Positions 1 through 15,248 of a stretch of 64,000 nucleotides of DNA are shown here, piece by piece. The notes beneath the pieces were generated by a model. That model was not told the DNA's origin. It saw nothing but the letters and a program-made list of their open reading frames with translations, and made no database searches. Each line of letters starts with the position of its first letter. Position 1 is the first letter of the stretch. The DNA lies in IMG/VR virus record IMGVR_UViG_3300042319_002138, positions 62,001-126,000 of that record, one strand, 5' to 3'. Made by a program: the position numbers and the translations under genes.

Positions 1-1480
1 CCCCAACAAAATCTCTTTTTGGTGATACGTCTGGTAAAGCTAAATTATTTTCATAAGACCATGCCATCATTAAAGTTTTCCACATTGTTGCGGTACCCAT
101 TGTAATTGAACGAACAAAGTTAGTCGGAACTAAAGCTGCGGTTAAGAATCCTGCTTGTGCATAAATGTCATCAACTTGTTCAGTTTCCCAAAGGTCATCA
201 TGAAGATATTCTTTAATTAAAAATTGACCGTCAACTATATTCCAAGTGTCTTCATAGGCATCAATAATTTCACCTTCAATTTCTTTCGGGTTTGGTTTAT
301 TTCCGTCTAATGAATACCACTGACCACTAGTCGGGTTATAATGATATTTTTTATTTTCTTTCCAAATCTTACCTAATTGAGCTCCATCAATATAAACACG
401 GTTGGGTCTTTCGATATTAGCCTCCTTAGCAATATATTTCAAACCACCTTCTTGTAAATTTGAATTTAAAGCCATCGCCTGTCTAACTCTGTGGTAAGTG
501 TCCATCACATTATAACCCCATAGTTGGGTTTGTTCATATTCCTCAGTTTCAGCACCCAATTTTAAACTAGCTTTTTTTCTAGATGCTTTAATCATTGGAT
601 GTTTTGTTTTAATAATGTCGTCAGTATTTAAACCTAAAAGTTGAGCACGTCCAGGAATTAATGTTTTCTTAACTTCAATCTTTCTTGTTTTTGGGTGTGT
701 GTATTTTTGTTCTTCTGTTCTGCCTATAAGGTAAGTCCAGTCAAAGTTTTCTGAGTTGTAACCAATAATAACTGTTGGTTCTAGTTCATGTATAATTTCA
801 AAAAATTCTTTTAACATTTTTTTTTCACCCTCTTTAGTATACTCACCGTCATTGTCGTAAGCAGTTAAAAGTTTTTGGAACCCACGATTATCTTTAATCC
901 CAATCATAAAAGCATGCCCTTCTGCTGGGTCAAGACTTGTGGTCTCAATATCGAATGTTAATTTGTGAACTTCTGTGTAATCCTCATAACCTTTAAATAA
1001 TCTTTTACCTGTTTGAATCATGAATTGTTCTACAGGGGGTAAAATTTGTATTAATCTTTTATCTCTATCCCAAGGATTGATTCCACCTTTTTTAAAGAAA
1101 TTAATTAGGTCACGGTAAGTACCTGTTGTTTTAACCAAAAAACTAAAACCATCTTCAAGTCTTTCGTTATCATCAGTATTTAATTTTTGTGTACTTATAC
1201 CATATTTTTTGGCCTCACGTCTAATGACATCTAGGTCATCACCGTAAAAACCACTTCCTCTTAATGATTTGGTCCAACAAAAAGGTGTAAATTTTTGGAC
1301 TTTAATTTTTTTACCCTTATTAGGGTCATCGATAATTAAATAAACTTTGTTGGTTTCGTCAATTGACCAATCGTCTGTTTGGTCTAATTCAATTGAGACA
1401 ATATATTTTTCAGGGTCATGTCCTTCTAAAAATAATTTAATGTCTTCAGGGGTTGCCTGTTTGATTTTTTCTTTTTTCAT
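1..1480 (-). CDS. Family B DNA polymerase, N-terminal and 3'-5' exonuclease part (runs off the window start)
   Basis: Not in the ORF track. Hand translation from ATG at 1480 gives MKKEKIKQATPEDIKLFLEG…, with ExoI FDIETT (~945), ExoII IIGYNSENFDW (~750) and ExoIII-like YLHDDLWE (~195). Confidence 0.85.
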   Translation of the reverse strand, partial: MKKEKIKQATPEDIKLFLEGHDPEKYIVSIELDQTDDWSIDETNKVYLIIDDPNKGKKIKVQKFTPFCWTKSLRGSGFYGDDLDVIRREAKKYGISTQKLNTDDNERLEDGFSFLVKTTGTYRDLINFFKKGGINPWDRDKRLIQILPPVEQFMIQTGKRLFKGYEDYTEVHKLTFDIETTSLDPAEGHAFMIGIKDNRGFQKLLTAYDNDGEYTKEGEKKMLKEFFEIIHELEPTVIIGYNSENFDWTYLIGRTEEQKYTHPKTRKIEVKKTLIPGRAQLLGLNTDDIIKTKHPMIKASRKKASLKLGAETEEYEQTQLWGYNVMDTYHRVRQAMALNSNLQEGGLKYIAKEANIERPNRVYIDGAQLGKIWKENKKYHYNPTSGQWYSLDGNKPNPKEIEGEIIDAYEDTWNIVDGQFLIKEYLHDDLWETEQVDDIYAQAGFLTAALVPTNFVRSITMGTATMWKTLMMAWSYENNLALPDVSPKRDFVG

Positions 1481-1586
1481 AAACTTTTTTGATTTTTGGT
1501 ACGGGGTAAATCTTAACCTCTCGTTATTTTATTAATTATACTACATTTATAAATAAAAACAAATATATTTATGATAAAAATAAGTT

Positions 1587-2366
1587 ATGTTTTTAAATAA
1601 AATAAATGTAAATAAATTAGATAATATAAAATATTTTGTTTTTTGTAGTGGAAAAACAGGGTCTAGAACTTTATTTGGTGGTATGAAAAATAAGTTTGGT
1701 TCTAACTCTGTCATACATTTACACAGTACGGCTCATTTTAAAGGTGGTCACCCAAGACACGGTGATGTAAAAAAATTAATTACTGACAGCTCAAAAAAAT
1801 TTGATAAAATCTATATTATAGATTCTTACAGGGAACCTTTTGAAAGGGGTATTTCCTCTTTTTTTCAGAACATAGACAAACATTGTCCTAATTGGCGCTC
1901 AATGTCAGTTGACGAGATTATCATTTTTTTTAATGAAAATAAATTATACCTTTTGGATATATATCATTCTTATCACGAATCGTGGGGTTATTTTAACATC
2001 CCTGTTGACGTAAGCTTTGATTTTGAAAAAGGTTATATTATTAGGGAACATGAAAATATGGTTTTTGTTAAAACCAGATTAAAAGAATCTCACAGATGGA
2101 ATCAGATATTTTCGGAAGTATTTGGGTCAGATATTAACTTTAATTATGAAAATGATTCTAGTGACAAAGATTATTTTACACTATATTCCGAATTTAAACA
2201 AAAATATAAATTACCACAAGAAATTAAAAATAATTTTTTATCTATTTTAAAGTCTGATTTAAATGACTTAAATAGAACTACCCCTTTTTATTTGACTTGG
2301 TCTGAGATGAAAAAGTTTATGACTAAAACAGAGATAAGTAATTACTTAAAAAAGTGGATTTATTAA
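1587..2366 (+). CDS. Sulfotransferase-fold protein (capsular polysaccharide synthesis / NKWYS-like)
   Basis: 5'-PSB-like GKTGSRT and 3'-PB-like YREPFERGISSFFQN; next to cysC. Confidence 0.6.
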   Translation: MFLNKINVNKLDNIKYFVFCSGKTGSRTLFGGMKNKFGSNSVIHLHSTAHFKGGHPRHGDVKKLITDSSKKFDKIYIIDSYREPFERGISSFFQNIDKHCPNWRSMSVDEIIIFFNENKLYLLDIYHSYHESWGYFNIPVDVSFDFEKGYIIREHENMVFVKTRLKESHRWNQIFSEVFGSDINFNYENDSSDKDYFTLYSEFKQKYKLPQEIKNNFLSILKSDLNDLNRTTPFYLTWSEMKKFMTKTEISNYLKKWIY

Positions 2367-2396
2367 AATTCATTATTAAATATTGGCATTATAAAA

Positions 2397-3260
2397 TTAT
2401 GTGTTTAAAATTATTTTTTTTAAGAATCCTTTAATACTTTCTTTTGAATACGAATTTTTTATTTTATCACCAATTAACCAAGGTTCTTTAAATTTTTTTA
2501 AATATTCCTCATTGTTATTATCCAAATAAATAATATATTCAATCATTTCGTTTTCATTTTTAAAATCATAATAATTTATAAAACTATTTGTGTTAAAGTC
2601 TTCATGTACTAATGGATTTCCCCAATATATAGGAATTGTATTTGCCAACATAGCGTTAGTTAATTTTTCAGAAGTATATCCTAGATATTCAACATTCTCA
2701 AAAGCTAAGGAAAATTTGTATTTTTTTTGGAAATCTAACTTATCAATAACACCTTCATTACCTATGTTATTGAGGAATCTACCACCTGAGTCGACTTTTT
2801 TATATTTACTTAATTTAAGAAAAAAATCATTTCTAAAAGAACATAATGGGTTAGATACAACAAAATTACAAAAATCCCTATTACACGAATCATCAATAAT
2901 ATTTTTATTTTCTAATTGGTAATAACTGTCACCCCATATAACATATAATGGTAACCTAAAATGATTATCACGTTCAATCCAATCATAACTCATCGAATAA
3001 TCACATTCATTATAGTTTGGGTGAACTGGTTCTCCAGAATAAAAAATTTTCTTACAATTATAATCTCTGTGTTTGACACCTCTTTTGTTATTAAAATAAC
3101 AACCGTTTTCATCAAAAACTGAAAAAAATAAAATGTCTGGATTTTCACTTATTGTAACATCAAAATCTTCTTTTAGTAAATTAAAAAATGGATTATTTAA
3201 TTTATCAAATCCTGACCAAAAATCAGAAAAATTTATTTTTAATTTATTGGAATTTGTCAT
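2397..3260 (-). CDS. GT10 alpha-1,3-fucosyltransferase-like glycosyltransferase
   Basis: YKFSLAFEN…YTSEKLTNAMLANTIPIYWG fucosyltransferase motif; FCNFVVSN; VDSGGR. Confidence 0.85.
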   Translation of the reverse strand: MTNSNKLKINFSDFWSGFDKLNNPFFNLLKEDFDVTISENPDILFFSVFDENGCYFNNKRGVKHRDYNCKKIFYSGEPVHPNYNECDYSMSYDWIERDNHFRLPLYVIWGDSYYQLENKNIIDDSCNRDFCNFVVSNPLCSFRNDFFLKLSKYKKVDSGGRFLNNIGNEGVIDKLDFQKKYKFSLAFENVEYLGYTSEKLTNAMLANTIPIYWGNPLVHEDFNTNSFINYYDFKNENEMIEYIIYLDNNNEEYLKKFKEPWLIGDKIKNSYSKESIKGFLKKIILNT

Positions 3261-4953
3261 TTAAATACGTTTTTATTTCATTTTCAAAATATTTAGAGTT
3301 ACCATTTATTCCATGACTTTTAACTAAATATCTAGATAATGATTCATCTATGAATCCTATTTTTTTATTATTGTAACCCAACCTTAACCAAAGTTCCCAA
3401 TCGTCTAAACAATCGCCTAGTTCAAGAATTTTATTGTCATAACACCCTAATTCTATTAAAGTTTTTTTATTAAACATTGCCATAGCATCTATATAGTTAT
3501 TTTTTTTTAAATCATGGTAATTAAATACTTTGTTAGATATATGATATATAAAATTATTTAATTCATCAAAACAATCTATTTTAGAATAAACAGCATCTAA
3601 ATCGTTTGATTTTAAATAATTTAGGTGTTTGATTAGGCAATCTTCATATATCTCATTATCAGCATCTAACATAAAAACATAATCACCTAATGATTCTCTT
3701 ATCGCTATATTTCTAGTATCTACTGTACCAGTATTTTTTTCTTTCTTTATTATAGTAAGGTTTATATCTTTGTTTAAAAAATTTATTATTTTTTTTAATG
3801 AATTGTCCGATGAATTATCATCAATAACTAAAACCTCAATATTTTTTAATTTATTTTTAATTACGGATTTTATTGATTTCTCAATGTATTTCTCATAGTT
3901 ATATGAAGTTATTATTACAGTTATTTCTGACTTTGTTAAATTATGATTTTTTATTATCTCATATTTATTTGTTAACAAGGATATATTTTTAATTTTTTTA
4001 GAAATTAATAATTTTTTTTCATATTTTTTTATAAAAAACTCACCATCAACAAAGTTATAAATTTTATGAAATCCAAATGGGTCGTCATAAAAATTTAAAT
4101 TATCTTTAAAATTGTATGAAGGTTCTATACTAAATTTTTTGGTGTCACCCATATCTTTATAGTAAAGATGGTTATATATTGAATAATAAACATCTTCTGG
4201 TATTTTTTCTAAGTCGTCAAATCCATTGGTAATTATTTTTTTAAAATTTTTATCGTTTAGTGCTTTTTTTATTAAACTAATACTTCTTAGTGATAACCCA
4301 CCGTTTCCTTGTGTCATATTAATAAATGTAATATTTGTTATCATTTTTTGAATTCCTTTAGTATGGTCCAATCCCCAGTTAGCCCCTAAATAGTCAAATT
4401 CTAAAAAGTAATCATCAAAATTTTTATAAATAAAAGTATCTGTTTGGTAAATTAAAACTTTTTCACAATCAATCTCATCCCAAAAGTTAATATCTAGTAA
4501 TAAGTTGTTATAATCGTTTCTATTTAATTCTCTTTTAATTAATCTAATTTCTATTTCTAAACTAATTTGGTTACAAATAGATTTAATTTGTTTGTAATTA
4601 TTTTGGTGACAATAAATAATGTGACCCCAACCGTCACCCAATTTTTGAATGGTGTTTTTTATAACAAATTCATTATGGTCTAAATTTCTGGTTTCAATTA
4701 TTAATGATTTCTTTTTTGATGATTTATCTATTTTTGGAAATTCTTTTGGTAGATGATTTGTTATATTTTTACAAATTTCTATGAATTTGGTAAAATCTAT
4801 TTTATTGCCATAAATAATTCTATTCTCAAATTGTCCATGATTTAAATAATGTGTATTAGCATCATTTTTTGTTTTAAGACCAGCGTTTCTTAAATCTTCA
4901 TAATACCCCAAATAGAATTCCCAATCAAAATCTTCAGGTAATTTATTTTTCAT
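3244..4953 (-). CDS. Multidomain glycosyltransferase (FDWEFY…HY N-terminal module, DUF5672-like GT, GT2)
   Basis: FDWEFYLGYYEDL…HYLNHG; LIYQTD, GNGGLSLRS, PEDVYY, PFGFHK; C-terminal GT2 with IITSYN, IDDNSSD, MLDAD, DDWELW. Confidence 0.75.
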   Translation of the reverse strand: MKNKLPEDFDWEFYLGYYEDLRNAGLKTKNDANTHYLNHGQFENRIIYGNKIDFTKFIEICKNITNHLPKEFPKIDKSSKKKSLIIETRNLDHNEFVIKNTIQKLGDGWGHIIYCHQNNYKQIKSICNQISLEIEIRLIKRELNRNDYNNLLLDINFWDEIDCEKVLIYQTDTFIYKNFDDYFLEFDYLGANWGLDHTKGIQKMITNITFINMTQGNGGLSLRSISLIKKALNDKNFKKIITNGFDDLEKIPEDVYYSIYNHLYYKDMGDTKKFSIEPSYNFKDNLNFYDDPFGFHKIYNFVDGEFFIKKYEKKLLISKKIKNISLLTNKYEIIKNHNLTKSEITVIITSYNYEKYIEKSIKSVIKNKLKNIEVLVIDDNSSDNSLKKIINFLNKDINLTIIKKEKNTGTVDTRNIAIRESLGDYVFMLDADNEIYEDCLIKHLNYLKSNDLDAVYSKIDCFDELNNFIYHISNKVFNYHDLKKNNYIDAMAMFNKKTLIELGCYDNKILELGDCLDDWELWLRLGYNNKKIGFIDESLSRYLVKSHGINGNSKYFENEIKTYLNDKFQ

Positions 4954-5410
4954 TTGTTTTATTTTTAATATCTTTTTTAATTCTTATATATTTATACCAC
5001 AATCTTTCATGACCAAAATATATAAATGGCTTCATAATAAGTTCACCAACACCAAGCAATGTCGAAACCTCAATTGTCGCACCTAACGAATATGCAACGA
5101 CAACTGTAGTTAAGGTTCCTAAAAATCTATAACTAACTGTTTTTAAAATATGTCTAATTAAAACAGATTCTTCTTTTATAGTTTTTATATATGCGACATT
5201 ATTTTCGACACTACAATAACCAACACAACTAACATGCCATTTATAATCATTAATTTCCGGTAACCAATCTTTAGTTGTTTGAGTGTGTCCATCAATAATG
5301 ATGTCTGAAACTAATGTCTCGTTACCGTTTTCAATTAATCTCCATCTTCCATCATCAGTTTTTGAATCTGTGTTAAATCTGATTTGATAAGTTTTACTTT
5401 GTATTTGCAT
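4943..5410 (-). CDS. Hypothetical protein with C-terminal DUF2061-like membrane domain
   Basis: RHILKTVSYRFLGTLTT…YFGHERLW pattern with a hydrophobic segment. Confidence 0.6.
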   Translation of the reverse strand: MQIQSKTYQIRFNTDSKTDDGRWRLIENGNETLVSDIIIDGHTQTTKDWLPEINDYKWHVSCVGYCSVENNVAYIKTIKEESVLIRHILKTVSYRFLGTLTTVVVAYSLGATIEVSTLLGVGELIMKPFIYFGHERLWYKYIRIKKDIKNKTNEK

Positions 5411-5858
5411 ATGTTAAAAAATTAATTATATAATCTTGTATCGATTCGTCCACCATATCCTTCCATTTGTCGTCTCCTTTAGCGATTGAGTTTCTTATTC
5501 CTGTTGCAGATATGAATCCGATATTATCTGGCGGTGTAAATTCATTTATTTCATACCCAACACCTCTACCGTAATTAACGGATTCAATATCAGGAATAAT
5601 GATAACTTTAACATCATCACCTTTTGAGTTATGATATTCTTCAATCATCTTTACCGTTTGTTTAGTGGTAAATGGATTTTTATCATCAGGTTCAATATCC
5701 CTAACCATTATTAAAGCTGGTATTCCCTCATTTAACTTTTGTTGTATTAGGTTAACATGTCCGTAGTGGTATGGTTGATATCGACCTATAAAAATAGCGT
5801 ATTTTTTATCTTTATTTGTGGTGGGTTGTCCACCGTGGTTTTTCTTTTCCCAACTCAT
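5394..5858 (-). CDS. HxGH nucleotidyltransferase (cytidylyltransferase-like)
   Basis: GRYQPYHYGH, NPF and ISATGIR motifs. Confidence 0.8.
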   Translation of the reverse strand: MSWEKKNHGGQPTTNKDKKYAIFIGRYQPYHYGHVNLIQQKLNEGIPALIMVRDIEPDDKNPFTTKQTVKMIEEYHNSKGDDVKVIIIPDIESVNYGRGVGYEINEFTPPDNIGFISATGIRNSIAKGDDKWKDMVDESIQDYIINFLTYANTK

Positions 5859-5862
5859 AGTT

Positions 5863-6828
5863 TTATTTTTTTATTTTAGGGTGTAATTGTAATTCATTTA
5901 AACACTTTTCCCAATTTTCAAACAACATACCTCTATCATCGATATAGACAGTTGCCGGGAATTTATGGTTAGAAACCTCAGTTATGTATTTAGATAAACC
6001 ATATTTTTCTAACCAAGGGTTGATAACCTCTTTTGGTCTTGATGAGAGAATTTTAAGGATATAACCCTCTTCATGTAATTTCTTAAGAGATTCTTCAGTA
6101 CCTTCCATGGGAGGGTCGTAAGCATTGCCTAAACCTTTAAATCCTTTAGAATATTTATGAATAACACCATCAAAATCAATTGCGATGGTATTTCTTTTAT
6201 CTAAGTTGTTTACTTCCTTCAAATTAGATTCAATGATACCTAAGTCTTTTAAGTCTACTATAATCACGTCAGTACATTGTTCTATCGACCATTTATCAGT
6301 GTCTAGTGTTCTAAATGGTTTAATTGGTTCTTCGTATGGTGAGTCTATTCCAGTAAATTGTTTAATTTCACCTGCTCTCGCTTTTTTATATAACCCTTTA
6401 GGGTCACGTTGTTCACAAATATCTAAATCTGCTTTTACATAAACCTCTAAAAAGTTATCTCTACCAATAATATCTTTTGCTTTTTCTCTTTCTTCTCTAA
6501 ATGGTGAAATAAATGCTGTAATAACAATTACACCAGAATCAGATAAAAGTTTAGCTACCTCAGCAATTCTCCTAATATTTTCTTTTCTGTCATCATCAGA
6601 AAAACCTAAATCTTTGTTAAGGCCCATTCTAATATTATCACCATCTAAGATATAAGCTAATTTACCTTCTTTTTGGAGTCTAAGTGCTAATTCATTTGCT
6701 ATTGTTGATTTACCTGACGCTGATAACCCAGTTAACCAAATAACTGGCGATTTTTGTTTAATAAGTTTTTGCCTATCTTCTTTTGTTACCACATGTTTGT
6801 GTTCTATTAAATTTGTATTCATTTTCAT
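5863..6828 (-). CDS. cysC: Adenylyl-sulfate (APS) kinase fused to a C-terminal HAD-like domain
   Basis: WLTGLSASGKST P-loop, LDGDNIR, RDPKGLY, FTGIDSPYE; C-terminal IAIDFDGVIH…SSR…YIDDRG. Confidence 0.9.
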   Translation of the reverse strand: MKMNTNLIEHKHVVTKEDRQKLIKQKSPVIWLTGLSASGKSTIANELALRLQKEGKLAYILDGDNIRMGLNKDLGFSDDDRKENIRRIAEVAKLLSDSGVIVITAFISPFREEREKAKDIIGRDNFLEVYVKADLDICEQRDPKGLYKKARAGEIKQFTGIDSPYEEPIKPFRTLDTDKWSIEQCTDVIIVDLKDLGIIESNLKEVNNLDKRNTIAIDFDGVIHKYSKGFKGLGNAYDPPMEGTEESLKKLHEEGYILKILSSRPKEVINPWLEKYGLSKYITEVSNHKFPATVYIDDRGMLFENWEKCLNELQLHPKIKK

Positions 6829-8399
6829 ATTTTAATAAATTTATCATTTTTATATATAAAAGTATTTATAACTTTAATCCATTTACTAACCAAATTTTTA
6901 TTTTCCAATATAAAAGGGTGAAGTGTTTCTTTAAAATCTTTTTTAGATTCATCTAAATATTTTTCATCATTTTTTCTGGTATAACTTTCTTTATGGTAAG
7001 CAACAGAATAACCATCGTTATAGTTTTTAAACCCATTAGATAATACTTTTATACCTAACTCAACGTCTTCAAAACAATTATTATAATTTTCATTAAAAAG
7101 TCCCATTTTAATAAATAAATCTTTATTTATTAATAGTAATGCGGCTGTATTACAAAAAACTTCTCTAACAGTGTTATTAAAATTATAGTAGTTATTTAAT
7201 TTTTCGTGGGTTAGATTTATGGATGGATAAAGTTCTTCAAAATTGTTAGCATTTAAAACTTTATCGGAATGAACTATAACTCCATTATGTTGTATGGTGT
7301 TATTTGGGTAATGTAACCTACACCCAACAGAACCACAATCTTTATTTGTTAAAAAAACGTTTAACATAGAACTAAGAACATCATTTTTGATTTCAATATC
7401 ATTATTACAAAATAATAAAAAATCGTGACCGTTACCTACATAGTTTTTAACAACATCGTTATTTATTTTAGCGAAATTATAATAATCATACTCAATTATT
7501 TTTAAATTCTTATAATCTTCAAAACTAATTTTTATTTGGTCCAATTCTTCTTTTGTAGACCCAGTATCAGCAATAAAAATACTAAATATGTCATGGTCAC
7601 AATTACTGTAAAATGAATTAACACAATTTATTAAAAGTTCTAAATTTCCTTTTGTTGGTATTATTATTGCTACTTTTTTTAATTTTTTAAAATTTTTTCT
7701 TTTTATTTTTTCGTAAAATATATTTTTAGGTTTTAAATCTAATGGTAAATATTTTTTATATTTTTCTAAAAAAATTTCTTTTATTTTAAAAAATTCTTCA
7801 TTAGGTTTACCCTCTGAATTGTGTGTAATGTCGAAAGAAAATGTAACACCTAATTTTACACCCTCAATAAAATTACTAACACAAAAAGAATGGTCATAAA
7901 AATGAAACCCATTTATATCCTCGTCAAATAGTTTTTTAATTTTATTTTTATCAACAGAAATAAAGAGTCCATCTAGGGTGACTACTTCAATTAAATCATT
8001 AAATTTAGGTGAGTATTTGGTTAACGTTTTTTTGTTATTATTTCTGTGGTAAACTTGTCCCACCATAGTTTGGTCCCTTTTGCTCCAAAAAATACCTGAT
8101 TCAGACATGAAACAAGAACCGGCTTTACCTATAACACCAAACTCAGGATTTTTTAAAAAATCATTTAACAATTTTACACCCCAATTCTGTGATAAAAAAA
8201 TATCATCATGACAAAAAACTAGAATATCGTATTTAGATTCTTTTAATCCTCTATTGTAAATTTCTGATAAGGAAAACTCATTTTGATTATTATATAATAA
8301 TATTTCATATTCCTTTAAACCAATAGTTTTTTTTATGTGATTTTTAAACTTATCAACACATAAATTGTCTTTATTAGAAGAAACAATAACACTAATCAT
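6825..8399 (-). CDS. Two-domain GT2-family glycosyltransferase
   Basis: FCHDD, TLDGLF, FHFYD in domain 1; IIPTK, ADTGS, CNND, FEDVEL in domain 2. Confidence 0.8.
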   Translation of the reverse strand: MISVIVSSNKDNLCVDKFKNHIKKTIGLKEYEILLYNNQNEFSLSEIYNRGLKESKYDILVFCHDDIFLSQNWGVKLLNDFLKNPEFGVIGKAGSCFMSESGIFWSKRDQTMVGQVYHRNNNKKTLTKYSPKFNDLIEVVTLDGLFISVDKNKIKKLFDEDINGFHFYDHSFCVSNFIEGVKLGVTFSFDITHNSEGKPNEEFFKIKEIFLEKYKKYLPLDLKPKNIFYEKIKRKNFKKLKKVAIIIPTKGNLELLINCVNSFYSNCDHDIFSIFIADTGSTKEELDQIKISFEDYKNLKIIEYDYYNFAKINNDVVKNYVGNGHDFLLFCNNDIEIKNDVLSSMLNVFLTNKDCGSVGCRLHYPNNTIQHNGVIVHSDKVLNANNFEELYPSINLTHEKLNNYYNFNNTVREVFCNTAALLLINKDLFIKMGLFNENYNNCFEDVELGIKVLSNGFKNYNDGYSVAYHKESYTRKNDEKYLDESKKDFKETLHPFILENKNLVSKWIKVINTFIYKNDKFIKI

Positions 8400-8438
8400 T
8401 ATATAACTTTTTATAAATAAAACCTTATTTTTTAAAAT

Positions 8439-9476
8439 TTAAACCCTAGAAATTTTAAACATTTCAGATTCTCGTTCTCTTCTAGTTTTTAAACCTGGAT
8501 ATTCGTCAAACATATTACTTGAGATATTTTTTATCTCTTCTTTAGCTTCTTGGAACTCACTTCGTTTAACGTATTGAATAAATTTGCTTGTCCTTAAATT
8601 ACCCACACCATGATTATAGGTTATAGAAACCATAGCATCATACATACCTTGTGTAATTTCAGGTTCTATACCTTTTTTATTCCACCCATCTAATATATTA
8701 TTAACACCTTCAGAAGCTTTTAACATATCATCTTGTAATAATTGTTCAGCCTGTTCTCTAGTAATTCTTGTAATTTTTTTACCAGGGTTACGTTTATTGT
8801 AAGGTATAATATCTTCATGATTTGGTACAAAACTATAATCACCCCCCGTACTACCTCTTTCGGGGTTAGAAAAGACAGCGTGACCATAACCTGTGGTATA
8901 AGCACCATCACCTAAATTATAGAAATATAAAACAGGTTTACCACCAATACCCTCTTCTTTTTTCAAATGTTTAAATAATCTTTGGCTAGGTTTTCTAATT
9001 TTTTGTGTTTTAACTACAGGTGTTTCTTTTTTAAATGAAGGCATTTCAAATCTAATACCACTCTGATAATCATTGCCTTCAATGGTGTTGGTGATACTAG
9101 TTATTTGGTTTACGGTTAAAATACCTAAAAAAGATGCCAAAACATATTTTATTATTTTTTTCCTAAGTTGGTTGGGTAAAGATTTTATTTTTTTCAATAA
9201 AAGATTTAGATACCCAATAACATCTTCTTTTGTTTTAACCCATTTTTTAGATAAATCTAATTCTTTTTTAGTTTCTTGTGGAAAATCCCACACATACTCT
9301 GGACTAGTTTTGTCATTAGAAATAACGTCCCATTCAAATTCGGGGCTGAGAACATCTTTAACTTCATTTAATAATAAAAGTTTATGTAAAAATTTATCTA
9401 AATATTTATTAGATTCTTCTATTTTATTAGAACTTAGACTTTGGATTTCTTCTCTAATAATTTTTCTGATATTCAT
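8439..9476 (-). CDS. GH24 (T4-type) lysozyme with long N-terminal extension
   Basis: EEG…DGAYTTGYGH, YDAMVSITYNHGVG, RRERESEMF; N-terminal IRKIIREE leader and a hydrophobic stretch. Confidence 0.8.
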   Translation of the reverse strand: MNIRKIIREEIQSLSSNKIEESNKYLDKFLHKLLLLNEVKDVLSPEFEWDVISNDKTSPEYVWDFPQETKKELDLSKKWVKTKEDVIGYLNLLLKKIKSLPNQLRKKIIKYVLASFLGILTVNQITSITNTIEGNDYQSGIRFEMPSFKKETPVVKTQKIRKPSQRLFKHLKKEEGIGGKPVLYFYNLGDGAYTTGYGHAVFSNPERGSTGGDYSFVPNHEDIIPYNKRNPGKKITRITREQAEQLLQDDMLKASEGVNNILDGWNKKGIEPEITQGMYDAMVSITYNHGVGNLRTSKFIQYVKRSEFQEAKEEIKNISSNMFDEYPGLKTRRERESEMFKISRV

Positions 9477-10897
9477 AAAGATTCTGTATCTATTTTAAAT
9501 TTTAATTGTTTAACAAATTCTTCAGAAAATCTCTTTAAAAATGGAACACCGTCTTTACCAAAATACATTAATCCTGATATATTAGTTATACATTTATGGC
9601 CACCAGAATTAGCCTGAACCATATCCCAACCAGTAATTTTTAACATCTTTAAAGCTTTAATTTCTCTATCAGAAAGTGATGTGTAAGGTTTATCCATTAT
9701 TTTTTTAATGGCGTTTTGCCATCTTTCTAATGTATAATCTGGTGAACCACCATTAGGTATTTCATCTAATCCCATAATACCATTCTCAGTATCACCTAAA
9801 ATAGCTACCATATCATTAAAACTAAAACCAACAGATTCTTCCGAAAATTCTTTATTTTTTTCAGCAAAATACTTTACAGTATCAATAGATATAATTTTGT
9901 TTTCTAGTTCAGATTTAAATATACTTAAAACGTCTTGTGCTATTTCACCTAAATTAACACCTTTAAGTTCCCTACCCTTTTTATAAGGATTACAAGAAGC
10001 TTGTAATAAACCTAATGGCCATGTTATAACCAAAAAATTGGCGTTAGGGTATAATTTAAAAGGTACGTATCTATCATAAGAACCTGGTTTAAACATAGAA
10101 CCCCCACCGTATTGTTTTACAATCCCATACTCTTCATCGTATTCTACATTACCACTTTTTGATTGGACCTCAATATAATTGGAAAGGTTAACTTTCATTT
10201 CTTGAGCTGTGGCGTAACCATATTCTTTTGCTAATCTAACTATATTTTGGTAAATGTTTAAAAGTGATGGTGTACATTCCATCACAAGAGTTTCTAAAAA
10301 TTTTGGTTTATTTTTGTAAGCTAATAATAATTTATTAGTTACAAGTGCCATACTAATTTTATTACGTTCTAAATCTTTTCCTTTATCTAGGGTAAAAACA
10401 TAGTTCATAACATCATCTGGTGTAATATCTAATCTAGCATAATCAGCACTATCTACAGTAGATATCATCATAATATCTTTTGATGGGAAAATGTCTGATG
10501 GTGAAAGAACGTTAGAGATAGTCTCAACGTTTGACCTTGAGTGTCTAAAACTTGTTGACGTACTTTTTTCAACACCAACTTGTGAATCGTGGTGGTCAGT
10601 ATGTATAACAAACATTGGTTTACCGTGAGCAAAATCTACCAATACAGGCATTATTTCACCACTAGCGTCAGGTTTTTTAATTGAGAATTCTTTATCACCG
10701 TATTGAATTACTTCAACATCAACAACTTCAATACCGTTGTTTTCTAAATAATTTTTCATGGCAATTGCCGTAGTAACTCCATCTAAATCCTGATGAAAAT
10801 AAATTTTAGCTTTTTGATATCTTTTAGCTAATGTATTTATATTTTGTATACCAGTTTCGACTAACAAAGCCTGTAGTATGTTTTCACTAATAATCAT
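9473..10897 (-). CDS. DHH-family phosphoesterase-like protein
   Basis: HQDLDG, VDFAH, TDHH and C-terminal GGH motifs. Confidence 0.7.
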   Translation of the reverse strand: MIISENILQALLVETGIQNINTLAKRYQKAKIYFHQDLDGVTTAIAMKNYLENNGIEVVDVEVIQYGDKEFSIKKPDASGEIMPVLVDFAHGKPMFVIHTDHHDSQVGVEKSTSTSFRHSRSNVETISNVLSPSDIFPSKDIMMISTVDSADYARLDITPDDVMNYVFTLDKGKDLERNKISMALVTNKLLLAYKNKPKFLETLVMECTPSLLNIYQNIVRLAKEYGYATAQEMKVNLSNYIEVQSKSGNVEYDEEYGIVKQYGGGSMFKPGSYDRYVPFKLYPNANFLVITWPLGLLQASCNPYKKGRELKGVNLGEIAQDVLSIFKSELENKIISIDTVKYFAEKNKEFSEESVGFSFNDMVAILGDTENGIMGLDEIPNGGSPDYTLERWQNAIKKIMDKPYTSLSDREIKALKMLKITGWDMVQANSGGHKCITNISGLMYFGKDGVPFLKRFSEEFVKQLKFKIDTESL

Positions 10898-10922
10898 TAT
10901 ACTTATTGTTTTTCAATAAATA

Positions 10923-11135
10923 TCACGACTTTTGGTTCAGTTCAATTAACTTATTTAGATACTGGAGGCATTTTTCTAAATCTTGTAAACCGTTTTTATG
11001 TCTCCATCTAGTAACATACTTAACAATATTGCCTTCAAAAAAGTCTAATTTTTGTGAGTGTGCGTAATCCCACATCTCAATTCCTTGGTTATAATGTGAG
11101 GGATGTTCTATTTGTTCTTTATTTTTATCTTCCAT
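10923..11135 (-). CDS. DUF3310 / T7 gp1.7-like putative nucleotide kinase domain
   Basis: HPSHY…GNIVKYVTRWRHKNGLQDLEK. Confidence 0.75.
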   Translation of the reverse strand: MEDKNKEQIEHPSHYNQGIEMWDYAHSQKLDFFEGNIVKYVTRWRHKNGLQDLEKCLQYLNKLIELNQKS

Positions 11136-11139
11136 TATT

Positions 11140-11169
11140 TTTGTTTTTAATTAAAAATAGTTATATTTG
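11140..11169 (+). promoter_or_regulatory. Bacteroidota-type housekeeping promoter
   Basis: TTTG at 11140-11143, 18 nt spacer, TATATTTG at 11162-11169, upstream of ATG 11188. Confidence 0.5.
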
Positions 11170-11187
11170 TAAAAATAAAAAAGTTTT

Positions 11188-11778
11188 ATGGAAAGAAAAA
11201 AATTAAATATATTTGAAAAAGTTGGTCTTTGGTGGAAATTTGAGGGTAGGTATTACCATAAAGATTTTATTAAAGGTGTTAAAAACCTTTGGTCATGGTT
11301 CCCTGTTATATGGAAAGACCGTGATTATGATGACCATTATATATTTGAAGTTTTAAAATTTAAATTAAATAAGCAAGCTGATTATATTGGTGGTAATGAT
11401 AGACATTTAAGTGCTAAAAGAAATACTGAAATAATGCGTCTTGTAACTAAACTAATTAAGTTACAACAAGATGATTTTTACGGTATGGAGTTTATGGATT
11501 ACCATAAAACTAAATATGACTTTATCCCAACAGACGAAAGTAAAAAATGGTATTCCATGGAAGATACTTTAGTGTCTGAAACTTTTGATGAGTATTTTAA
11601 AAAATACCCACGTCAATATAAAAAAGTGGTAAGTGGTGAAATAAATCTATATCAAAGACCTTTTGAAGAAAAAGATAAAAAATTAATTGCTATGGAGATT
11701 GCACATGAAAATCAAGATAGATGTAATAAACTTATTTTTAAACTTCTTGAAAAGAATATACAAAAATGGTGGGATTAA
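11188..11778 (+). CDS. Hypothetical phage protein
   Basis: 196-aa ORF with its own promoter; Trp-rich KNLWSWFPVIWKDRDYD segment. Confidence 0.7.
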   Translation: MERKKLNIFEKVGLWWKFEGRYYHKDFIKGVKNLWSWFPVIWKDRDYDDHYIFEVLKFKLNKQADYIGGNDRHLSAKRNTEIMRLVTKLIKLQQDDFYGMEFMDYHKTKYDFIPTDESKKWYSMEDTLVSETFDEYFKKYPRQYKKVVSGEINLYQRPFEEKDKKLIAMEIAHENQDRCNKLIFKLLEKNIQKWWD

Positions 11779-13595
11779 TAACCCACCATTAATTTTTTAA
11801 AGAAATCGGTTGAGATGTCAAATTCTTCTTGTTCATCACCGACAACTGTATTAATAACACGTTTTTTCTTTTGTAACATTTCATACATCATTTCATCAAT
11901 AGTACCTTGAGCTATTGGGTAATAAACATTAACAGTTTTTGACTGACCGATGCGAAAGGCCCTATCTTCCGCCTGTGCGTGATTAGCTGGTACAAAATCT
12001 AAATCATTCATAATAACTACCTGTGCCGCTGTAAGTGTAATTGCGGTACCAGCAGATACAAGATTGCCAACAAAGACTTTAATATTTTCATTCTCTTGGA
12101 ACCCGTCAATAGACTTTTGTTTTTGTGTACCACTCAGTTTACCGTTATGACCCACAGCTATTCTACCAAAATGATTCATTAATGCATCAAATGAGTGGGT
12201 GAAGTTTGTAAATATAATTACCTTTTGACCGTTCTCAATTGCTTGTTCAGCTAATTCAATCGTGTGTTTAACTTTTTCTTGTGCTAAATATTTTCTAAGA
12301 ACAACTAATTCAACCATGTGTCTACCTGAACCAAGACGTTTACCTTCACTTTTGGCCCATTCAAGATATTCCTCAAATACATTACCATACCCTTTCATAT
12401 CATCAATCTCAATATAATAAGGTGCCACAATTTTTGGTGGTAGGTCTAGGTGGTCTTCTTTTTTTCTTCTTAAGATAAGTGATTTAGTTCTTTCATGTAA
12501 CTCTTCTAAGTTAGAAGCTCCATCAGTTAACCATATATCTTTGTATTGTCCACTATTTAATTTCTTTTTAAATTTTTTACCATCACAATATCTAAATGCA
12601 AAGTATTTCCAACTAGAAGTTACTGGTGATTCACAGAGATTAAGTAGGTTAAAATAATCCATTGGTCTGTTTGCGATAGGTGTACCCGTTAATAACCACC
12701 TTTTACCAATACTTTCAGCAATCTGGTTAACTATTTTAGTCCTATCAGCTTTAGGATTTTTAACCATGTGAGCTTCATCTAATATAATAATGTCGTAACC
12801 TTCATTAACCAAATGTCTATTTATTTCCCACTCTTCATAATTTTTTCTGTTATCTATTAAAGTATGGAAATTTTTAAGTATGTCATAATTAATGATAGTA
12901 AATTTTTTGGGATTCCAATGACCAGTTTTTAAAATACTAATATCTTCTTCAGGAACAAAATTTGATATCTCACGGTACCAATTAATTTTGGCGTTAGCCG
13001 GACAAACTACTAAAACTTTTTCCGCTCCCGTTTCTAAAGCTGAAACAATGGATTGAAATGTTTTGCCAAGACCCATGTCATCAGCAAGAATACAATTTTT
13101 TTTACTTAAAAGAAATTTAATACCCTTTTCTTGGTGGGGGAAAGCTTTCCACCCTCTTCTATCTAATTTTTGGTATTTTTCAAAATCAACCTCAACATTA
13201 ATTTCGGTATCATATAAGTTCTCAAATACCTGTGTTTTTGGTACATAAAAAAGTGGTGAGTATTTTTGATTTTTAAAAACCTTACCCCTAACATGATAAC
13301 TTTTTTCTGTATCACCTAAAACAGTTTCAACAAATATTTTTTCAGGTACATGATTAAGTTCAAACTTTTCTTGTAACTGTTTACCCAAAAACTCTGTTAT
13401 GGTAATAACTTTATTAACATCAACAGGGTCCTTATCAAAATTATTTTCTACATACTCAGATACACTGGGTGATATAGGAAAAGAACCTTCCTTATCTAAT
13501 CTTTCTTTTAACGATATTAAATACTCATTTTTACCTTCATAGGTCTCTAGTTTTAATAAAGTTTTTCTATTCTTTAATTTACCAATATCTAGCAT
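11775..13595 (-). CDS. SNF2-family (SF2) helicase/ATPase
   Basis: DDMGLGKT, DEAH, LTGTP, QAEDRAFRIGQ motifs. Confidence 0.92.
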   Translation of the reverse strand: MLDIGKLKNRKTLLKLETYEGKNEYLISLKERLDKEGSFPISPSVSEYVENNFDKDPVDVNKVITITEFLGKQLQEKFELNHVPEKIFVETVLGDTEKSYHVRGKVFKNQKYSPLFYVPKTQVFENLYDTEINVEVDFEKYQKLDRRGWKAFPHQEKGIKFLLSKKNCILADDMGLGKTFQSIVSALETGAEKVLVVCPANAKINWYREISNFVPEEDISILKTGHWNPKKFTIINYDILKNFHTLIDNRKNYEEWEINRHLVNEGYDIIILDEAHMVKNPKADRTKIVNQIAESIGKRWLLTGTPIANRPMDYFNLLNLCESPVTSSWKYFAFRYCDGKKFKKKLNSGQYKDIWLTDGASNLEELHERTKSLILRRKKEDHLDLPPKIVAPYYIEIDDMKGYGNVFEEYLEWAKSEGKRLGSGRHMVELVVLRKYLAQEKVKHTIELAEQAIENGQKVIIFTNFTHSFDALMNHFGRIAVGHNGKLSGTQKQKSIDGFQENENIKVFVGNLVSAGTAITLTAAQVVIMNDLDFVPANHAQAEDRAFRIGQSKTVNVYYPIAQGTIDEMMYEMLQKKKRVINTVVGDEQEEFDISTDFFKKLMVGY

Positions 13596-14204: not shown

Positions 14205-15248
14205 ATGGCATTACCAAAAAAAAGAAAAACTGATTTACAAATTAAAAGTATAGACCCACAAGGTGGTCCTGCTCATTGGGTTGAACAGTTTTTAGAACAA
14301 AATAAACAATTTTTACCTAGGTCAGTTGATTTTGCTGATTTAGATGAGGGTTTTGTTGAATTTGTTGAAAACGACTTAGGTATAGTTTTAAAGGGTGAAA
14401 AAGTACCTGTTAATTTTTTAACATTACAAAGATGGAATGAATTTACAAAAATTTGGCCAAATACAGATAAATATAAAAATGTTAAAATACCTTTTGTTTC
14501 TGTTGTTAGAAAACCTAATCCCGAAAAAGGTACTAACCCAGCCGACTTTAAAATACCCGTAAGAAAAAATTTCCCTTATATGCAAATACCCGTTTGGGAT
14601 GGTAATCGTAAAGGTGCTGACATTTACGGAATACCAAATCCCGTAGGTGTCGACATGATGTATACCGTTAGATTGTTTTGTTACAAAATGAGGGATTTAA
14701 ACAAATTAAATCAAAAAGTATTACAGGCATTTGCTTCAGCTCAAGCTTACGTTAATATTAAAGGACACTACTTCCCAATCATGTTAGAAACCATTGGTGA
14801 TGAAAGTCAAATTGATGATTTAGAAGGAAAAAGATTTTATGTACAAACTTATGAAATGAGGTTAATGGGTTATTTGGTTGATTCGGAAGAATTTGATGTT
14901 AAACCAGCAATCAGTAGAGCTTTAGTTACTTTTGAAACTAGTAGTAGGATACCAAAACCTTTAGCTAGATTTATTAAAGATAATGCTAAAGATGATAAAA
15001 CATTAAAATGTATTATACAGTTTTTACCTGGTTCATCAACTTCTATAAGATTTTCTACCGAAGTTAAAACTAGTTTTAGTTCTGTAGATTTAGATAACAT
15101 AACATCTTATACAATTTATGTAAATGGGGTTTTAACAACCATACCTTTTGTAGTCGAACCTTCTGACGTTATAATTATAAACATAGTAAAGGACGATTCA
15201 ACCATGATTGGTGAAATAACACTTAGAGGATTAATTATTACAGAATGA
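14205..15248 (+). CDS. Putative tail terminator / completion protein (T4 gp15-like)
   Basis: Position; KIPFVSV and PVGVDMMYTV segments. Confidence 0.45.
   Translation: MALPKKRKTDLQIKSIDPQGGPAHWVEQFLEQNKQFLPRSVDFADLDEGFVEFVENDLGIVLKGEKVPVNFLTLQRWNEFTKIWPNTDKYKNVKIPFVSVVRKPNPEKGTNPADFKIPVRKNFPYMQIPVWDGNRKGADIYGIPNPVGVDMMYTVRLFCYKMRDLNKLNQKVLQAFASAQAYVNIKGHYFPIMLETIGDESQIDDLEGKRFYVQTYEMRLMGYLVDSEEFDVKPAISRALVTFETSSRIPKPLARFIKDNAKDDKTLKCIIQFLPGSSTSIRFSTEVKTSFSSVDLDNITSYTIYVNGVLTTIPFVVEPSDVIIINIVKDDSTMIGEITLRGLIITE

Follow-up and report, generated by a model that had tools for sequence, protein, structure and literature searches.

A phage gene island predicted to supply PAPS and to build a fucose-containing, sulfated glycan, with a small nucleotidyltransferase as a putative non-canonical ATP sulfurylase

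Introduction

The sulfation of a secondary glycan independently of housekeeping sulfur assimilation is exemplified by the NodP/NodQ/NodH system of Sinorhizobium meliloti, where a dedicated ATP sulfurylase and APS kinase are encoded next to a carbohydrate sulfotransferase and glycan-building enzymes, for the sulfation of the Nod factor; NodP and NodQ are homologues of CysD, CysN and CysC. In the bifunctional PAPS synthases, i.e. the Sat-CysC fusions of bacteria and fungi and PAPSS1/2 of animals, the APS-forming and the APS-phosphorylating activities are fused, the former belonging to an ATP sulfurylase (PF01747) of about 390 aa. Viruses are also equipped with glycosylation machineries, as in the chlorovirus and mimivirus glycans and in the glycosylation of mycobacteriophage virions, where soluble glycosyltransferases, together with virus-encoded GDP-sugar synthesis (Gmd, Fcl), build glycans in the cytoplasm, often on virion proteins; in our literature searches, we have found no report of sulfation as a phage-encoded modification. 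Phage cysC and cysH, on the other hand, are widely reported as auxiliary metabolic genes of assimilatory sulfate reduction; it has been noted that cysC phages have larger genomes and that phage cysC is transcribed in a lake (Chen and Banfield 2024, PMC10914622), while the conserved partner genes that we describe below are not mentioned in the text that we searched.

Here, we have analysed a window of 64,000 nucleotides (positions 62,001 to 126,000 of the IMG/VR record IMGVR_UViG_3300042319_002138) from a huge lake-water phage; all coordinates refer to this window. The record is of 226 kb and is estimated to be 70% complete, and it belongs to a tailed phage with a T4-like tail sheath (phrog_23, E 1e-55). 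A sequence-only reading of positions 1587-8399 had proposed a PAPS-dependent sulfation and glycosylation island, composed of a sulfotransferase-fold gene, a GT10 fucosyltransferase-like gene, two multidomain GT2 genes, cysC, an HxGH nucleotidyltransferase (NTase) and a DUF2061-like protein; this observation has been confirmed, with each of the named genes present. Its interpretation, namely a pathway that builds a sulfated, possibly fucosylated glycan on virion proteins or on the host surface, with the virion favoured by a late-type motif, is supported in part: the pathway itself is strengthened by our findings, while neither the virion as the target nor late expression is established.

The findings are presented in four parts: the first describes the genes of the island, the second the conserved cassette of kinase, NTase and DUF2061 protein, the third the proposed pathway, and the fourth the upstream motif and the acceptor of the glycan.

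Genes of the island

The seven genes are tightly packed; the six genes of the minus strand overlap by 4-17 nt or are 4 nt apart. This clustering is not due to chance, since the same kinds of genes recur together in many related viral contigs.

The gene at 1587-2366 (+) encodes a protein of 259 aa without a Pfam family above threshold, which we refer to as “ST259”. The absence of a sulfotransferase fold here would have counted against the sequence-only reading; however, the AF2 model is confident (pLDDT 91), and its 16 best structural matches by VIA-align are all sulfotransferases (Z 8.6-6.8 over about 155-185 residues), while the top Foldseek hits, SULT1C1 and SULT7A1, are weak (E 0.04). The protein has a P-loop-like GKTGS.T motif (5'-phosphosulfate loop) and a YREP.ER..S.FF motif (3'-phosphate-binding type), and residues K23, G25 and R82 are invariant among 43 homologues, some of which are fused to inorganic pyrophosphatase.

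The gene at 2397-3260 (-) encodes a GT10 alpha-1,3-fucosyltransferase-like glycosyltransferase of 287 aa, recognised by both FucT_N (E 1.5e-21, 77 bits, cut-off 27) and Glyco_transf_10 (E 6.5e-20, 72 bits, cut-off 24); in line with this, the phage also encodes Gmd (409 bits) and an Fcl-like protein (236 bits), 15 kb away. Two further glycosyltransferases have two domains and no TM segment: the protein of 569 aa at 3244-4953 (-) combines DUF5672 (residues 144-296) with a GT2 domain (residues 345-481), and the protein of 524 aa at 6825-8399 (-) combines Glyco_tranf_2_5 (residues 4-214) with GT2 (residues 245-429). DUF5672 proteins recur in related islands, e.g. in the related locus L092.

The gene at 5863-6828 (-) encodes a canonical CysC that is fused to a small HAD-like domain, which the sequence-only reading had not mentioned. 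The adenylyl-sulfate (APS) kinase domain (6229-6828 (-), residues 1-200) has the P-loop, the DGDN.R motif and the full lid; it scores 272.9 bits on NF003013 (cut-off 163) and 267.5 bits on TIGR00455 (cut-off 138.7), and it matches PAPSS1 and plant APK at E 1e-53 to 1e-57 (E 1.3e-57 to Arabidopsis APK1, PDB ID:3uie). The HAD-like domain (5866-6216 (-), residues about 205-321) is a small, cap-less predicted phosphatase with a DxDGV motif I, scoring 26.3 bits on HAD_2 (cut-off 23.8) when searched alone and matching phrog_1238 at E 9e-18; the same fusion occurs in the related locus L027, and no close relative was found among solved structures. The removal of the by-product PAP by this domain is no more than a guess.

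The gene at 4943-5410 (-) encodes the DUF2061 protein of 155 aa (Pfam DUF2061, 47.6 bits, cut-off 23), in which an all-beta N-domain (residues 6-77) is followed by a long helical hairpin (residues 83-154, the DUF2061 part); the AF2 model (pLDDT 82.5) gave no fold match, and an accessory or anchoring role is only inferred.

The gene at 5394-5858 (-) encodes the HxGH/SxTxxR NTase of 154 aa. It shares the HxGH ... NPFT ... SxTxxR scaffold with the NadM-type (archaeal) nicotinamide-nucleotide adenylyltransferases, which are its best sequence matches (E 5e-14); however, only its N-terminal half is NadM-like, with the N-terminal 70 residues aligning with solved NMNATs at E 4e-10 to 2e-9. The alignment stops at the DIE motif, the segment that holds NMN being replaced by a shorter, invariant block, and the NMNAT models score 52 and 49 bits, far below their cut-offs of 127 and 181. 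The only sequence relatives of known function are NMN and phosphopantetheine adenylyltransferases; similarity to Sat is not detected, even by profile, and the PUA-like domain of the canonical enzyme is absent.

A conserved cassette of kinase, nucleotidyltransferase and DUF2061 protein

The sequence-only reading had missed that the NTase and the DUF2061 protein form a conserved three-gene cassette with the kinase. In 79 viral loci that were found with the NTase, a gene of the APS_kinase family lies directly upstream in 68 and is fused in 9, while the remaining 2 loci are cut by contig ends; adjacency or fusion therefore holds in 77 of 77 informative loci. The fusion of the NTase with the kinase also occurs in 18 cellular loci. 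DUF2061 follows the NTase in 47 of the 79 viral loci, is fused to the NTase in two cases (P0102 and P0194) and is fused to APS-kinase domains in four bacterial genomes.

In other huge phages, the cassette is found beside Pfam-recognised sulfotransferases and glycosyltransferases: Sulfotransfer_1/3 lies next to it in contigs of up to 411 kb, 14 distinct loci carry Sulfotransfer_3 together with GT8 and GT9-like genes, locus L023 has GT10 and FkbM, and locus L092 has three sulfotransferase types, a short kinase, DUF2061, DUF5672 and KdsA. Neither Sat (PF01747) nor CysD/CysH (PF01507) was found in this phage or in five others with the cassette, two of which are at least 95% complete; as the record analysed here is only about 70% complete, a Sat gene could lie in the missing part. 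The absence of a PAPS/APS reductase, the sulfotransferase-fold gene in the island, the Pfam sulfotransferases directly beside the cassette in at least 14 distinct related loci and the translational packing with the glycosyltransferases make it very unlikely that cysC merely boosts the assimilatory sulfate reduction of the host (cysteine supply) next to an unrelated surface-conversion module, although phage cysC is usually read in this way and the bacterial genomes that carry NTase orthologues use the pathway with CysH.

Orthologues of the NTase (62-70% identity) occur in 78 of 101 genomes of one bacterial order, where Sat occurs in 18, never together with the NTase, CysD in 0, CysC in 92 and CysH in 97. 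Three complete chromosomes have CysC, CysH beside a PHO4-type permease, and NadD above cut-off, but no Sat or CysD. On a CysH tree, however, 17 of the 18 Sat-bearing genomes form one clade, so that the complementarity of Sat and NTase amounts to about one evolutionary event and not to 96 independent observations; in addition, the bacterial orthologues are not beside sulfur genes.

Part of the evidence points away from sulfate. A roughly 150-aa kinase without the APS-kinase lid is present in 60 of the 79 viral loci. One phage group (L056-L087), with an NTase about 50% identical, a short kinase and no DUF2061, shows no Sulfotransfer_1, Sulfotransfer_3 or ST259 gene, even in a complete genome of 326 kb, and distant kinase-NTase fusions in Xylella and Xanthomonas siphophages sit by a COG3236 gene. 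The pair could thus make a different 3'-phosphorylated adenylyl compound without sulfur, i.e. an NAD- or CoA-like nucleotide, for example for counter-defence, with the link to sulfotransferases holding only in some lineages; the PPAT/DPCK and NMNAT/kinase pairs are precedents for the same two folds working together. We consider this reading very unlikely: the kinase of this window is a full, canonical CysC above equivalog-type cut-offs, the short kinases keep the P-loop, DGD.LR and (V/I)SP motifs and still score 65-73 bits on PF01583, and NTases 77-92% identical to the one described here sit with short kinases directly beside Sulfotransfer_3 genes.

Proposed sulfation and glycosylation pathway

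We interpret the island as a self-contained cytoplasmic pathway that activates sulfate and builds a sulfated, probably fucosylated glycan during infection, a reading that rests on sequence and structure prediction alone and that we regard as about as likely as not. In this view, the NTase would adenylylate sulfate (ATP + sulfate gives APS + PPi), CysC phosphorylates APS to PAPS, the two bi-domain GT2 proteins and the GT10 fucosyltransferase assemble the sugar chain, with GDP-fucose available from the phage's own Gmd and Fcl, and ST259 would move sulfate from PAPS to that product. The assignments of CysC and of the glycosyltransferases are shown by homology, and the fold of ST259 is shown by its predicted structure, while its activity and the ATP sulfurylase activity of the NTase are inferred; the physical partnership of the DUF2061 protein with the kinase and the NTase is inferred from the fusions, and the clearing of a phosphorylated by-product by the HAD domain remains a guess. 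The fusions of ST259 homologues with pyrophosphatase fit a PPi-releasing step.

Compared with NodP/NodQ/NodH, a private PAPS supply is likewise encoded next to a sulfotransferase and glycan-building enzymes, but no CysD, CysN or Sat is present here, the first step is assigned to an unrelated small HxGH enzyme, and the system is carried by a phage. Compared with the PAPS synthases, the two steps would again be encoded side by side or fused, but the partner of the kinase is not a PF01747 enzyme. Compared with the virus-encoded glycosylation machineries, a PAPS supply and a sulfotransferase are added, and compared with the phage auxiliary metabolic genes, cysC is likewise found in a large freshwater phage, but its context, with sulfotransferases and glycosyltransferases and no cysH, points to sulfation.

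Alternatively, the island could still sulfate a glycan with APS from the host's own Sat or CysDN, while the NTase does something else, most simply NMN adenylylation for NAD salvage, its place next to CysC being a matter of co-regulation. This is compatible with the NadM-type sequence matches and with the incomplete record; moreover, a CysC-NTase fusion in a Nomurabacteria genome lies after a Nudix-domain protein, a classical NadM partner, and phage NadM-Nudix genes are known in isolates. We find this alternative doubtful, since the NMNAT models score below their cut-offs, the NMN-binding half does not align, the genomic partners are APS kinases rather than Nudix or NadV, and the bacteria with the orthologue already have NadD and lack every known ATP sulfurylase while keeping CysC and CysH.

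Upstream motif and candidate acceptors

The motif TATAAATA, which the sequence-only reading had taken as late-type, is present at 1548-1555 (+), with its 5' end 39 nt before the ATG at 1587 of the ST259 gene; it also occurs at 4989-4996 (-) and 6863-6870 (-), 42-43 nt before the ATGs of the DUF5672-GT2 and CysC-HAD genes. Its enrichment upstream of starts is modest, being only about twofold (20 of 90 sites, against 10.5% for composition-matched motifs; binomial p about 0.001 against permuted motifs); it also precedes the helicase gene and is absent before the sheath and the other large structural genes, so that it is a weak argument for virion decoration.

The enzymes lack membrane segments, and there is no flippase, polymerase or exporter in the island; the acceptor should therefore be cytoplasmic or on the inner face of the membrane, i.e. 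either a virion protein or a lipid-linked envelope precursor, without our evidence resolving which. The transfer to host envelope precursors (LPS or capsule), to block superinfection or to alter the cell surface, is possible but rather unlikely. In its favour, the island lies in the replication/lysis region (PolB, lysozyme, helicase) and not among structural genes, DUF2061 is annotated as a membrane protein and has one marginally hydrophobic helix, and related islands carry KdsA, SIS and GT25/GT9-like genes of LPS type. Against it stand the solubility of all enzymes and the lack of a flippase, polymerase or exporter in the island. On the side of the virion, a Ser/Thr-rich ORF of 664 aa (15245-17239), which the sequence-only reading had also put forward, lies next to the sheath gene and is a candidate acceptor by composition only; in related phages, the cassette lies among giant Laminin_G_3 proteins and directly before a Pro/Thr-rich protein that looks like an O-glycosylation substrate.

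Genomic setting of the gene cluster

The region that we have examined occupies bases 62001-126000 of a 226 kb IMG/VR virus record, which is estimated to be about 70% complete, and its GC content is 23-36%; it encodes a family-B DNA polymerase, a helicase, a phage lysozyme and a T4-type tail sheath. The nearest relatives of the sheath, at about 31-38% identity, are found in an uncultured 484 kb phage, a Microcystis phage and T4-like cyanophages; the possibility that the genome is that of a eukaryotic giant virus was considered and dropped, because the tail sheath, the phage lysozyme and the T4-like relatives argue for a phage. Near-identical DNA occurs in 24 lake-water metagenome runs, none of which is on record as RNA, while a megablast search of positions 1-12000 of the window against isolated phages returned no match.

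Between the polymerase gene (2-1480, minus strand) and the lysozyme gene (8439-9476, minus strand), we have found one plus-strand gene (1587-2366) and six minus-strand genes that run from 8399 down to 2397, with overlaps of 4-17 nt or a 4-nt gap. The sequence-only reading had listed here a sulfotransferase-fold gene, a GT10 fucosyltransferase-like gene, two multidomain GT2 genes, cysC, an HxGH nucleotidyltransferase and a DUF2061-like protein, and this observation is confirmed in every item; the one addition is that CysC carries a C-terminal HAD-like domain.

A predicted sulfotransferase fold without a curated family

The protein encoded at 1587-2366, which we refer to as “ST259” after its length of 259 aa, belongs to no Pfam, NCBIfam or PHROG family, with only a sub-threshold NKWYS hit (E 0.007), and a sequence search of the PDB returned no relative. 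It has 43 homologues in metagenomes; their alignment shows the loop GKTGS.T at residues 22-28, after the first strand (K23 and G25 invariant, T28 over 90%), and the block YREP.ER..S.FF at residues 81-93 (R82 invariant); by inspection, these correspond to the 5'-phosphosulfate-binding loop (PKxGTT type) and to the 3'-phosphate-binding R...S motif of sulfotransferases, respectively. The AlphaFold model is confident (pLDDT 91, pTM 0.86). Foldseek places SULT1C1 and SULT7A1 first, but only with weak E-values, while an exhaustive structural comparison (VIA-align) with 48,161 chains gives sulfotransferases as all sixteen best rows (Z 8.6 to 6.8), with 154-186 aligned residues that span model residues about 7-255, i.e. 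nearly the whole model; the Z values are middling, but the list is uniform. We accept the sulfotransferase alpha/beta fold (with a P-loop-kinase-like core) for the model and consider ST259 a new sequence family within it; the absence of such a fold, which had been named beforehand as a condition that would refute the proposed sulfation pathway, is thus not what we have found.

Three homologues of ST259 (P0029, P0034 and P0035 in our set of homologues) are fused to inorganic pyrophosphatase; one such fusion is located at 8001-9200 of a contig (locus L090) that also carries ELO, RFC-like, DnaJ and RNR genes and looks like a giant virus of eukaryotes.

Glycan-building genes

The GT10 protein (2397-3260) contains the FucT N-terminal domain and the GT10 catalytic C-terminal domain (FucT_N and Glyco_transf_10, 77.1 and 72 bits), while the two other glycosyltransferase genes encode DUF5672 plus GT2 and Glyco_tranf_2_5 plus GT2, respectively; all of these domains pass the Pfam cut-offs and none of the proteins has a hydrophobic segment. 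About 15 kb to the left of the window (G000:C1:44538-47320, i.e. in the record of the same phage; locus L190, 460-3242), a PhoH-like gene, an Fcl-like reductase gene (311 aa, best hit GDP-L-fucose synthase) and a Gmd gene (351 aa, 409 bits on TIGR01472) are located in a row, constituting a phage-encoded route to GDP-fucose, the donor that would be required by a GT10 fucosyltransferase. The sequence-only reading had called the glycan possibly fucosylated, and this part of it therefore gains support, with the sugar specificity being inferred from family membership and gene content.

A conserved cassette around the APS kinase

The CysC domain (residues 1-200 of the protein encoded at 5863-6828) is canonical: it scores 272.9 bits on NF003013 (cut-off 163), 267.5 on TIGR00455 (cut-off 138.7) and 228 bits on PF01583, it matches plant APS kinase at E 1e-57, and it has the P-loop, DGDN.R, FISP and lid motifs. 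The gene that follows (5394-5858) encodes a 154-aa HxGH/SxTxxR nucleotidyltransferase (hereafter, the NTase); more than 4,300 close homologues exist, of which the 120 best are about 77-86% identical.

In order to explore the surroundings of this gene, 79 viral loci that carry it have been retrieved and annotated with the proteins of the window. An APS_kinase-family gene lies directly upstream of the NTase in 68 loci and is fused to it in 9, while the other two loci are cut by the contig end; thus, the two are adjacent or fused in 77 of 77 informative loci. A full CysC is found in 17 loci, while in 60 loci (e.g. L016, 9546-10004, and L058, 9516-9956) it is replaced by a kinase of roughly 150 aa that lacks the whole lid region, but keeps the P-loop and the APS-contacting motifs DGD.LR and SP, and still scores 65-73 bits on PF01583; these short kinases occur next to NTases up to 92% identical to that of the window. 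The DUF2061 gene follows in 47 loci. Natural fusions join DUF2061 to the NTase (homologues P0102 and P0194), and in four bacterial genomes (loci L185-L188) DUF2061 is fused in frame to the N-terminus of an APS-kinase domain, in ORFs of 245-260 aa (G017:C2:44987-45616, G015:C103:19937-20566, G017:C5:200267-200890, G016:C33:14426-15046 and G021:C149:1811-2437, where G numbers denote genomes and C numbers their contigs); in G017 and G015, a second, full CysC lies next to the fusion. The three proteins are therefore tied together by adjacency and by two kinds of fusion.

In contigs of up to 411 kb, the cassette is followed by a Sulfotransfer_1/3 gene and flanked by giant Laminin_G_3 proteins. Fourteen distinct loci, most of them with the short kinase and with NTases 73-92% identical to that of the window, carry a Sulfotransfer_3 gene directly before the kinase, as well as GT8 and GT9-like genes; seven of them also have, directly after DUF2061 and before giant proteins, a 259-aa protein with a long Pro/Thr repeat region, which is a plausible O-glycosylation substrate (10919-11698 in locus L022, with its cluster in L015, L020, L026, L029, L031 and L032). 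Another viral locus, L023, has GT10 and an FkbM methyltransferase. A richer island of the same kind is located at 138-11467 of a 31.6 kb contig (L092), where DUF2061, FkbM, GT8, Sulfotransfer_2, TOD1_MUCI70, a short APS kinase, Sulfotransfer_1/3, DUF2827, DUF5672, an ST259 homologue, SIS, GT25 and KdsA are combined, with no NTase within the stretch retrieved.

Neither this phage nor five other large phages with the cassette, two of which are at least 95% complete, has a PAPS/APS reductase or CysD (PF01507) or a Sat (PF01747). This argues for sulfation and not for assimilation, and it leaves the first step of sulfate activation without a known enzyme in these phages, although the present phage record is incomplete and a sat gene in the missing third cannot be excluded.

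The nucleotidyltransferase as a candidate ATP sulfurylase

The NTase resembles NadM-type NMN adenylyltransferases only in its N-terminal 70 residues (HxGH, NPFT). It does not qualify as a member of that family, as it scores 52.3 bits on NF002243 (cut-off 127) and 48.9 on TIGR01527 (cut-off 181), while the HMMER alignments to the solved structures 1f9a, 1ej2 and 2qjt end at profile position about 92, at the DIE motif, after which the NTase family has a shorter, invariant block followed by the SxTxxR motif; the NMN-binding C-terminal half is thus not conserved. Nor is it a member of the canonical ATP sulfurylase family: there is no PF01747 match anywhere in the phage and the profile of the NTase family finds no Sat among solved structures, with only the superfamily signature (an HxxH-type motif) being shared. 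Our proposal is, accordingly, that the NTase works like an ATP sulfurylase, and not that it belongs to Sat.

A scan of species-representative genomes has found orthologues at 63-73% identity, including three complete chromosomes labelled Thermodesulfobacteriota and MAGs labelled Dadabacteria. In the three chromosomes, the gene stands alone among housekeeping genes; these genomes have one full CysC (225-231 bits), one CysH-type protein next to a PHO4-type permease and NadD above its cut-off, but no Sat and no CysD. In chromosomes G007 and G006 (loci L183, 5058-6785, and L184, 5846-7589), cysH directly follows the PHO4/PiT-type permease, an arrangement reminiscent of the CysP sulfate permease of Bacillus, while in the Sat-bearing relatives cysH lies beside sat.

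Across 101 genomes of that order, the NTase is present in 78 and Sat in 18, the two never occurring together; the 5 genomes with neither are all fragmented assemblies. CysD is present in none, CysC in 92 and CysH in 97; of the 78 genomes with the NTase, 74 have CysC and none has Sat or CysD. Fisher's test on the Sat/NTase table gives p 9e-16, but we have rejected this value as evidence, since a tree of the CysH domain from 60 of these genomes, in which three rows were aberrant, puts 17 of the 18 Sat genomes in one clade nested among NTase genomes, so that the exclusivity amounts to about one replacement event. What remains is a clean pathway hole: seventy-four genomes keep APS kinase and a reductase, have no known way to make APS and carry this orphan adenylyltransferase, while a sister clade has Sat instead. 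A second phyletic comparison, in Marinimicrobia, was uninformative, as the NTase is present in only 4 of 81 genomes.

Several findings speak against the assignment. The neighbourhoods of the bacterial orthologues, as well as those of the Marinimicrobia and Nomurabacteria loci, gave no link to sulfur, and a CysC-NTase fusion in a Nomurabacteria genome follows a Nudix-domain protein. Distant kinase-NTase fusions (phrog_10255, annotated as “kinase” or “adenylylsulfate kinase”) occur in 55-kb siphophages of Xylella, Xanthomonas and Stenotrophomonas [e.g. L088, Xylella phage Bacata, 29138-29878, and relatives, and L089, Stenotrophomonas phage DLP6]; in Bacata, the fusion lies beside a COG3236/GTP cyclohydrolase II-like gene. 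In a second, divergent phage group (loci L056-L087), with NTases about 50% identical, short kinases and no DUF2061, no Sulfotransfer_1, Sulfotransfer_3 or ST259 gene has been found, even in a complete 326 kb genome; in that group the product may differ, or the sulfotransferase may be of yet another unrecognised family.

The universal linkage to APS kinases, the pathway hole, the chemistry of the fold (attack of an oxyanion on the alpha-phosphate of ATP with release of PPi, as in Sat itself) and the pyrophosphatase fusions of ST259, taken together, lead us to rate the assignment as about as likely as not. The gene content, the family memberships, the predicted fold of ST259, the conservation of the cassette and the phyletic pattern are results of the analysis, while the catalysis of ATP + sulfate to APS + PPi by the NTase and the PAPS-dependent sulfuryl transfer by ST259 are inferred.

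Sulfate activation is thought to be carried out by two enzyme types only (Sat and CysDN). Under our hypothesis, which has roughly even odds, the 154-aa NadM-like NTase would be the founding member of a third, unrecognised class of ATP sulfurylase, analogous to Sat and CysDN but not homologous at family level; it would supply APS to CysC in many huge aquatic phages, there together with a DUF2061 partner, and would be the housekeeping sulfate-activating enzyme of a whole bacterial order (Dadabacteria-like Thermodesulfobacteriota MAGs) that lacks Sat and CysD. If so, it would fill a pathway hole in a widespread order and change metabolic reconstructions from metagenomes, as genome-based calls of “no sulfate assimilation” would need revision wherever this gene is present. 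Phage cysC is usually read as an assimilatory auxiliary metabolic gene (PMC10914622); it would instead mark complete, portable PAPS factories, i.e. three-gene cassettes that serve sulfotransferases acting on phage-made glycans and not cysteine synthesis. A 154-aa ATP sulfurylase together with a short APS kinase might also be useful for enzymatic PAPS regeneration.

Dedicated PAPS supply for glycan sulfation occurs in bacteria (NodPQH), and viral glycosylation machineries with Gmd and Fcl are also established. Our literature searches found no paper that links DUF2061, a NadM-like enzyme or a phage gene cluster with PAPS synthesis or glycan sulfation, although an absence from the literature searched is not proof, and no report of sulfated glycans made by phages, which could affect adsorption, host range, defence evasion or particle stability in lakes and oceans. 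We regard the island as a PAPS-dependent glycan sulfation cluster that differs from those already described in being phage-borne, in having a new sulfotransferase family and in a probable non-homologous replacement of ATP sulfurylase; the link to the cassette also gives DUF2061 its first functional context.

Upstream motif and possible acceptors

The motif TATAAATA, which in T4-type late promoters is expected at about -10 of late genes, occurs 90 times in the 226 kb record; twenty copies lie 8-70 nt upstream of a same-strand start, against 10.5% on average for the 55 other arrangements of the same letters (binomial p about 0.001). Three of these copies [1548-1555 (+), 4989-4996 (-) and 6863-6870 (-)] sit at nearly the same distance, 39-43 nt, before the ATGs of ST259, DUF5672-GT2 and CysC-HAD, with two of them being located inside the 3' end of the upstream coding sequence. 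The motif also precedes the helicase gene and is absent before the sheath and the other large structural genes of the window; it may be a promoter element shared by the transcription units of the island, but it does not show late expression. Scans of the island for sigma-70 promoters and terminators are at noise level in this AT-rich DNA.

The interpretation given by the sequence-only reading, i.e. a sulfated, possibly fucosylated glycan placed on virion proteins or on the host surface, with the late-type motif favouring the virion, is thus supported only in part: the evidence favours a sulfation and glycosylation pathway, while the argument from the motif is weak and the two kinds of acceptor remain possible. 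A virion target is suggested by the soluble enzymes, by the position of the cassette among giant fibre-like proteins and before the Pro/Thr-rich protein in related phages and by a 664-aa ORF with 26% Ser+Thr and no family match [15245-17239 (+)], located just upstream of the tail sheath gene, which the sequence-only reading had called the Ser/Thr-rich fibre. A host-envelope target is suggested by the position of this island in the replication/lysis region and by the LPS-type genes (KdsA, SIS, GT9-like and GT25) in related islands.

Additional domains of the island and its surroundings

The HAD-like domain that is fused to CysC (5866-6216) scores 26.3 bits on HAD_2, just above the cut-off of 23.8, when taken on its own, and a DxDGV motif I and a DD motif IV are visible in its sequence; a PDB sequence search returned nothing useful, and our searches pointed to no subfamily or substrate. 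The same fusion is seen in viral locus L027. Removal of PAP, the inhibitory by-product of sulfotransferases, is an attractive but speculative role for this domain.

The DUF2061 protein (4943-5410) scores 47.6 bits on PF09834 (gathering score 23.1) and is predicted as a seven-stranded beta domain followed by a two-helix hairpin (pLDDT 82.5). Fold searches with the model were dominated by generic helical hairpins, and the beta N-domain found no match. Only one 19-residue window reaches a hydropathy typical of membrane helices, so the “membrane protein” label of this family is uncertain here.

A 474-aa ORF [9473-10897 (-)] has only a weak DHH hit (E 0.002) and nothing useful in a PDB sequence search; DHH enzymes include pAp phosphatases, but nothing in our data shows that activity for this protein. 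Its homologues are located 1.5-4 kb from the kinase-NTase pair in the divergent phage group L056-L087.
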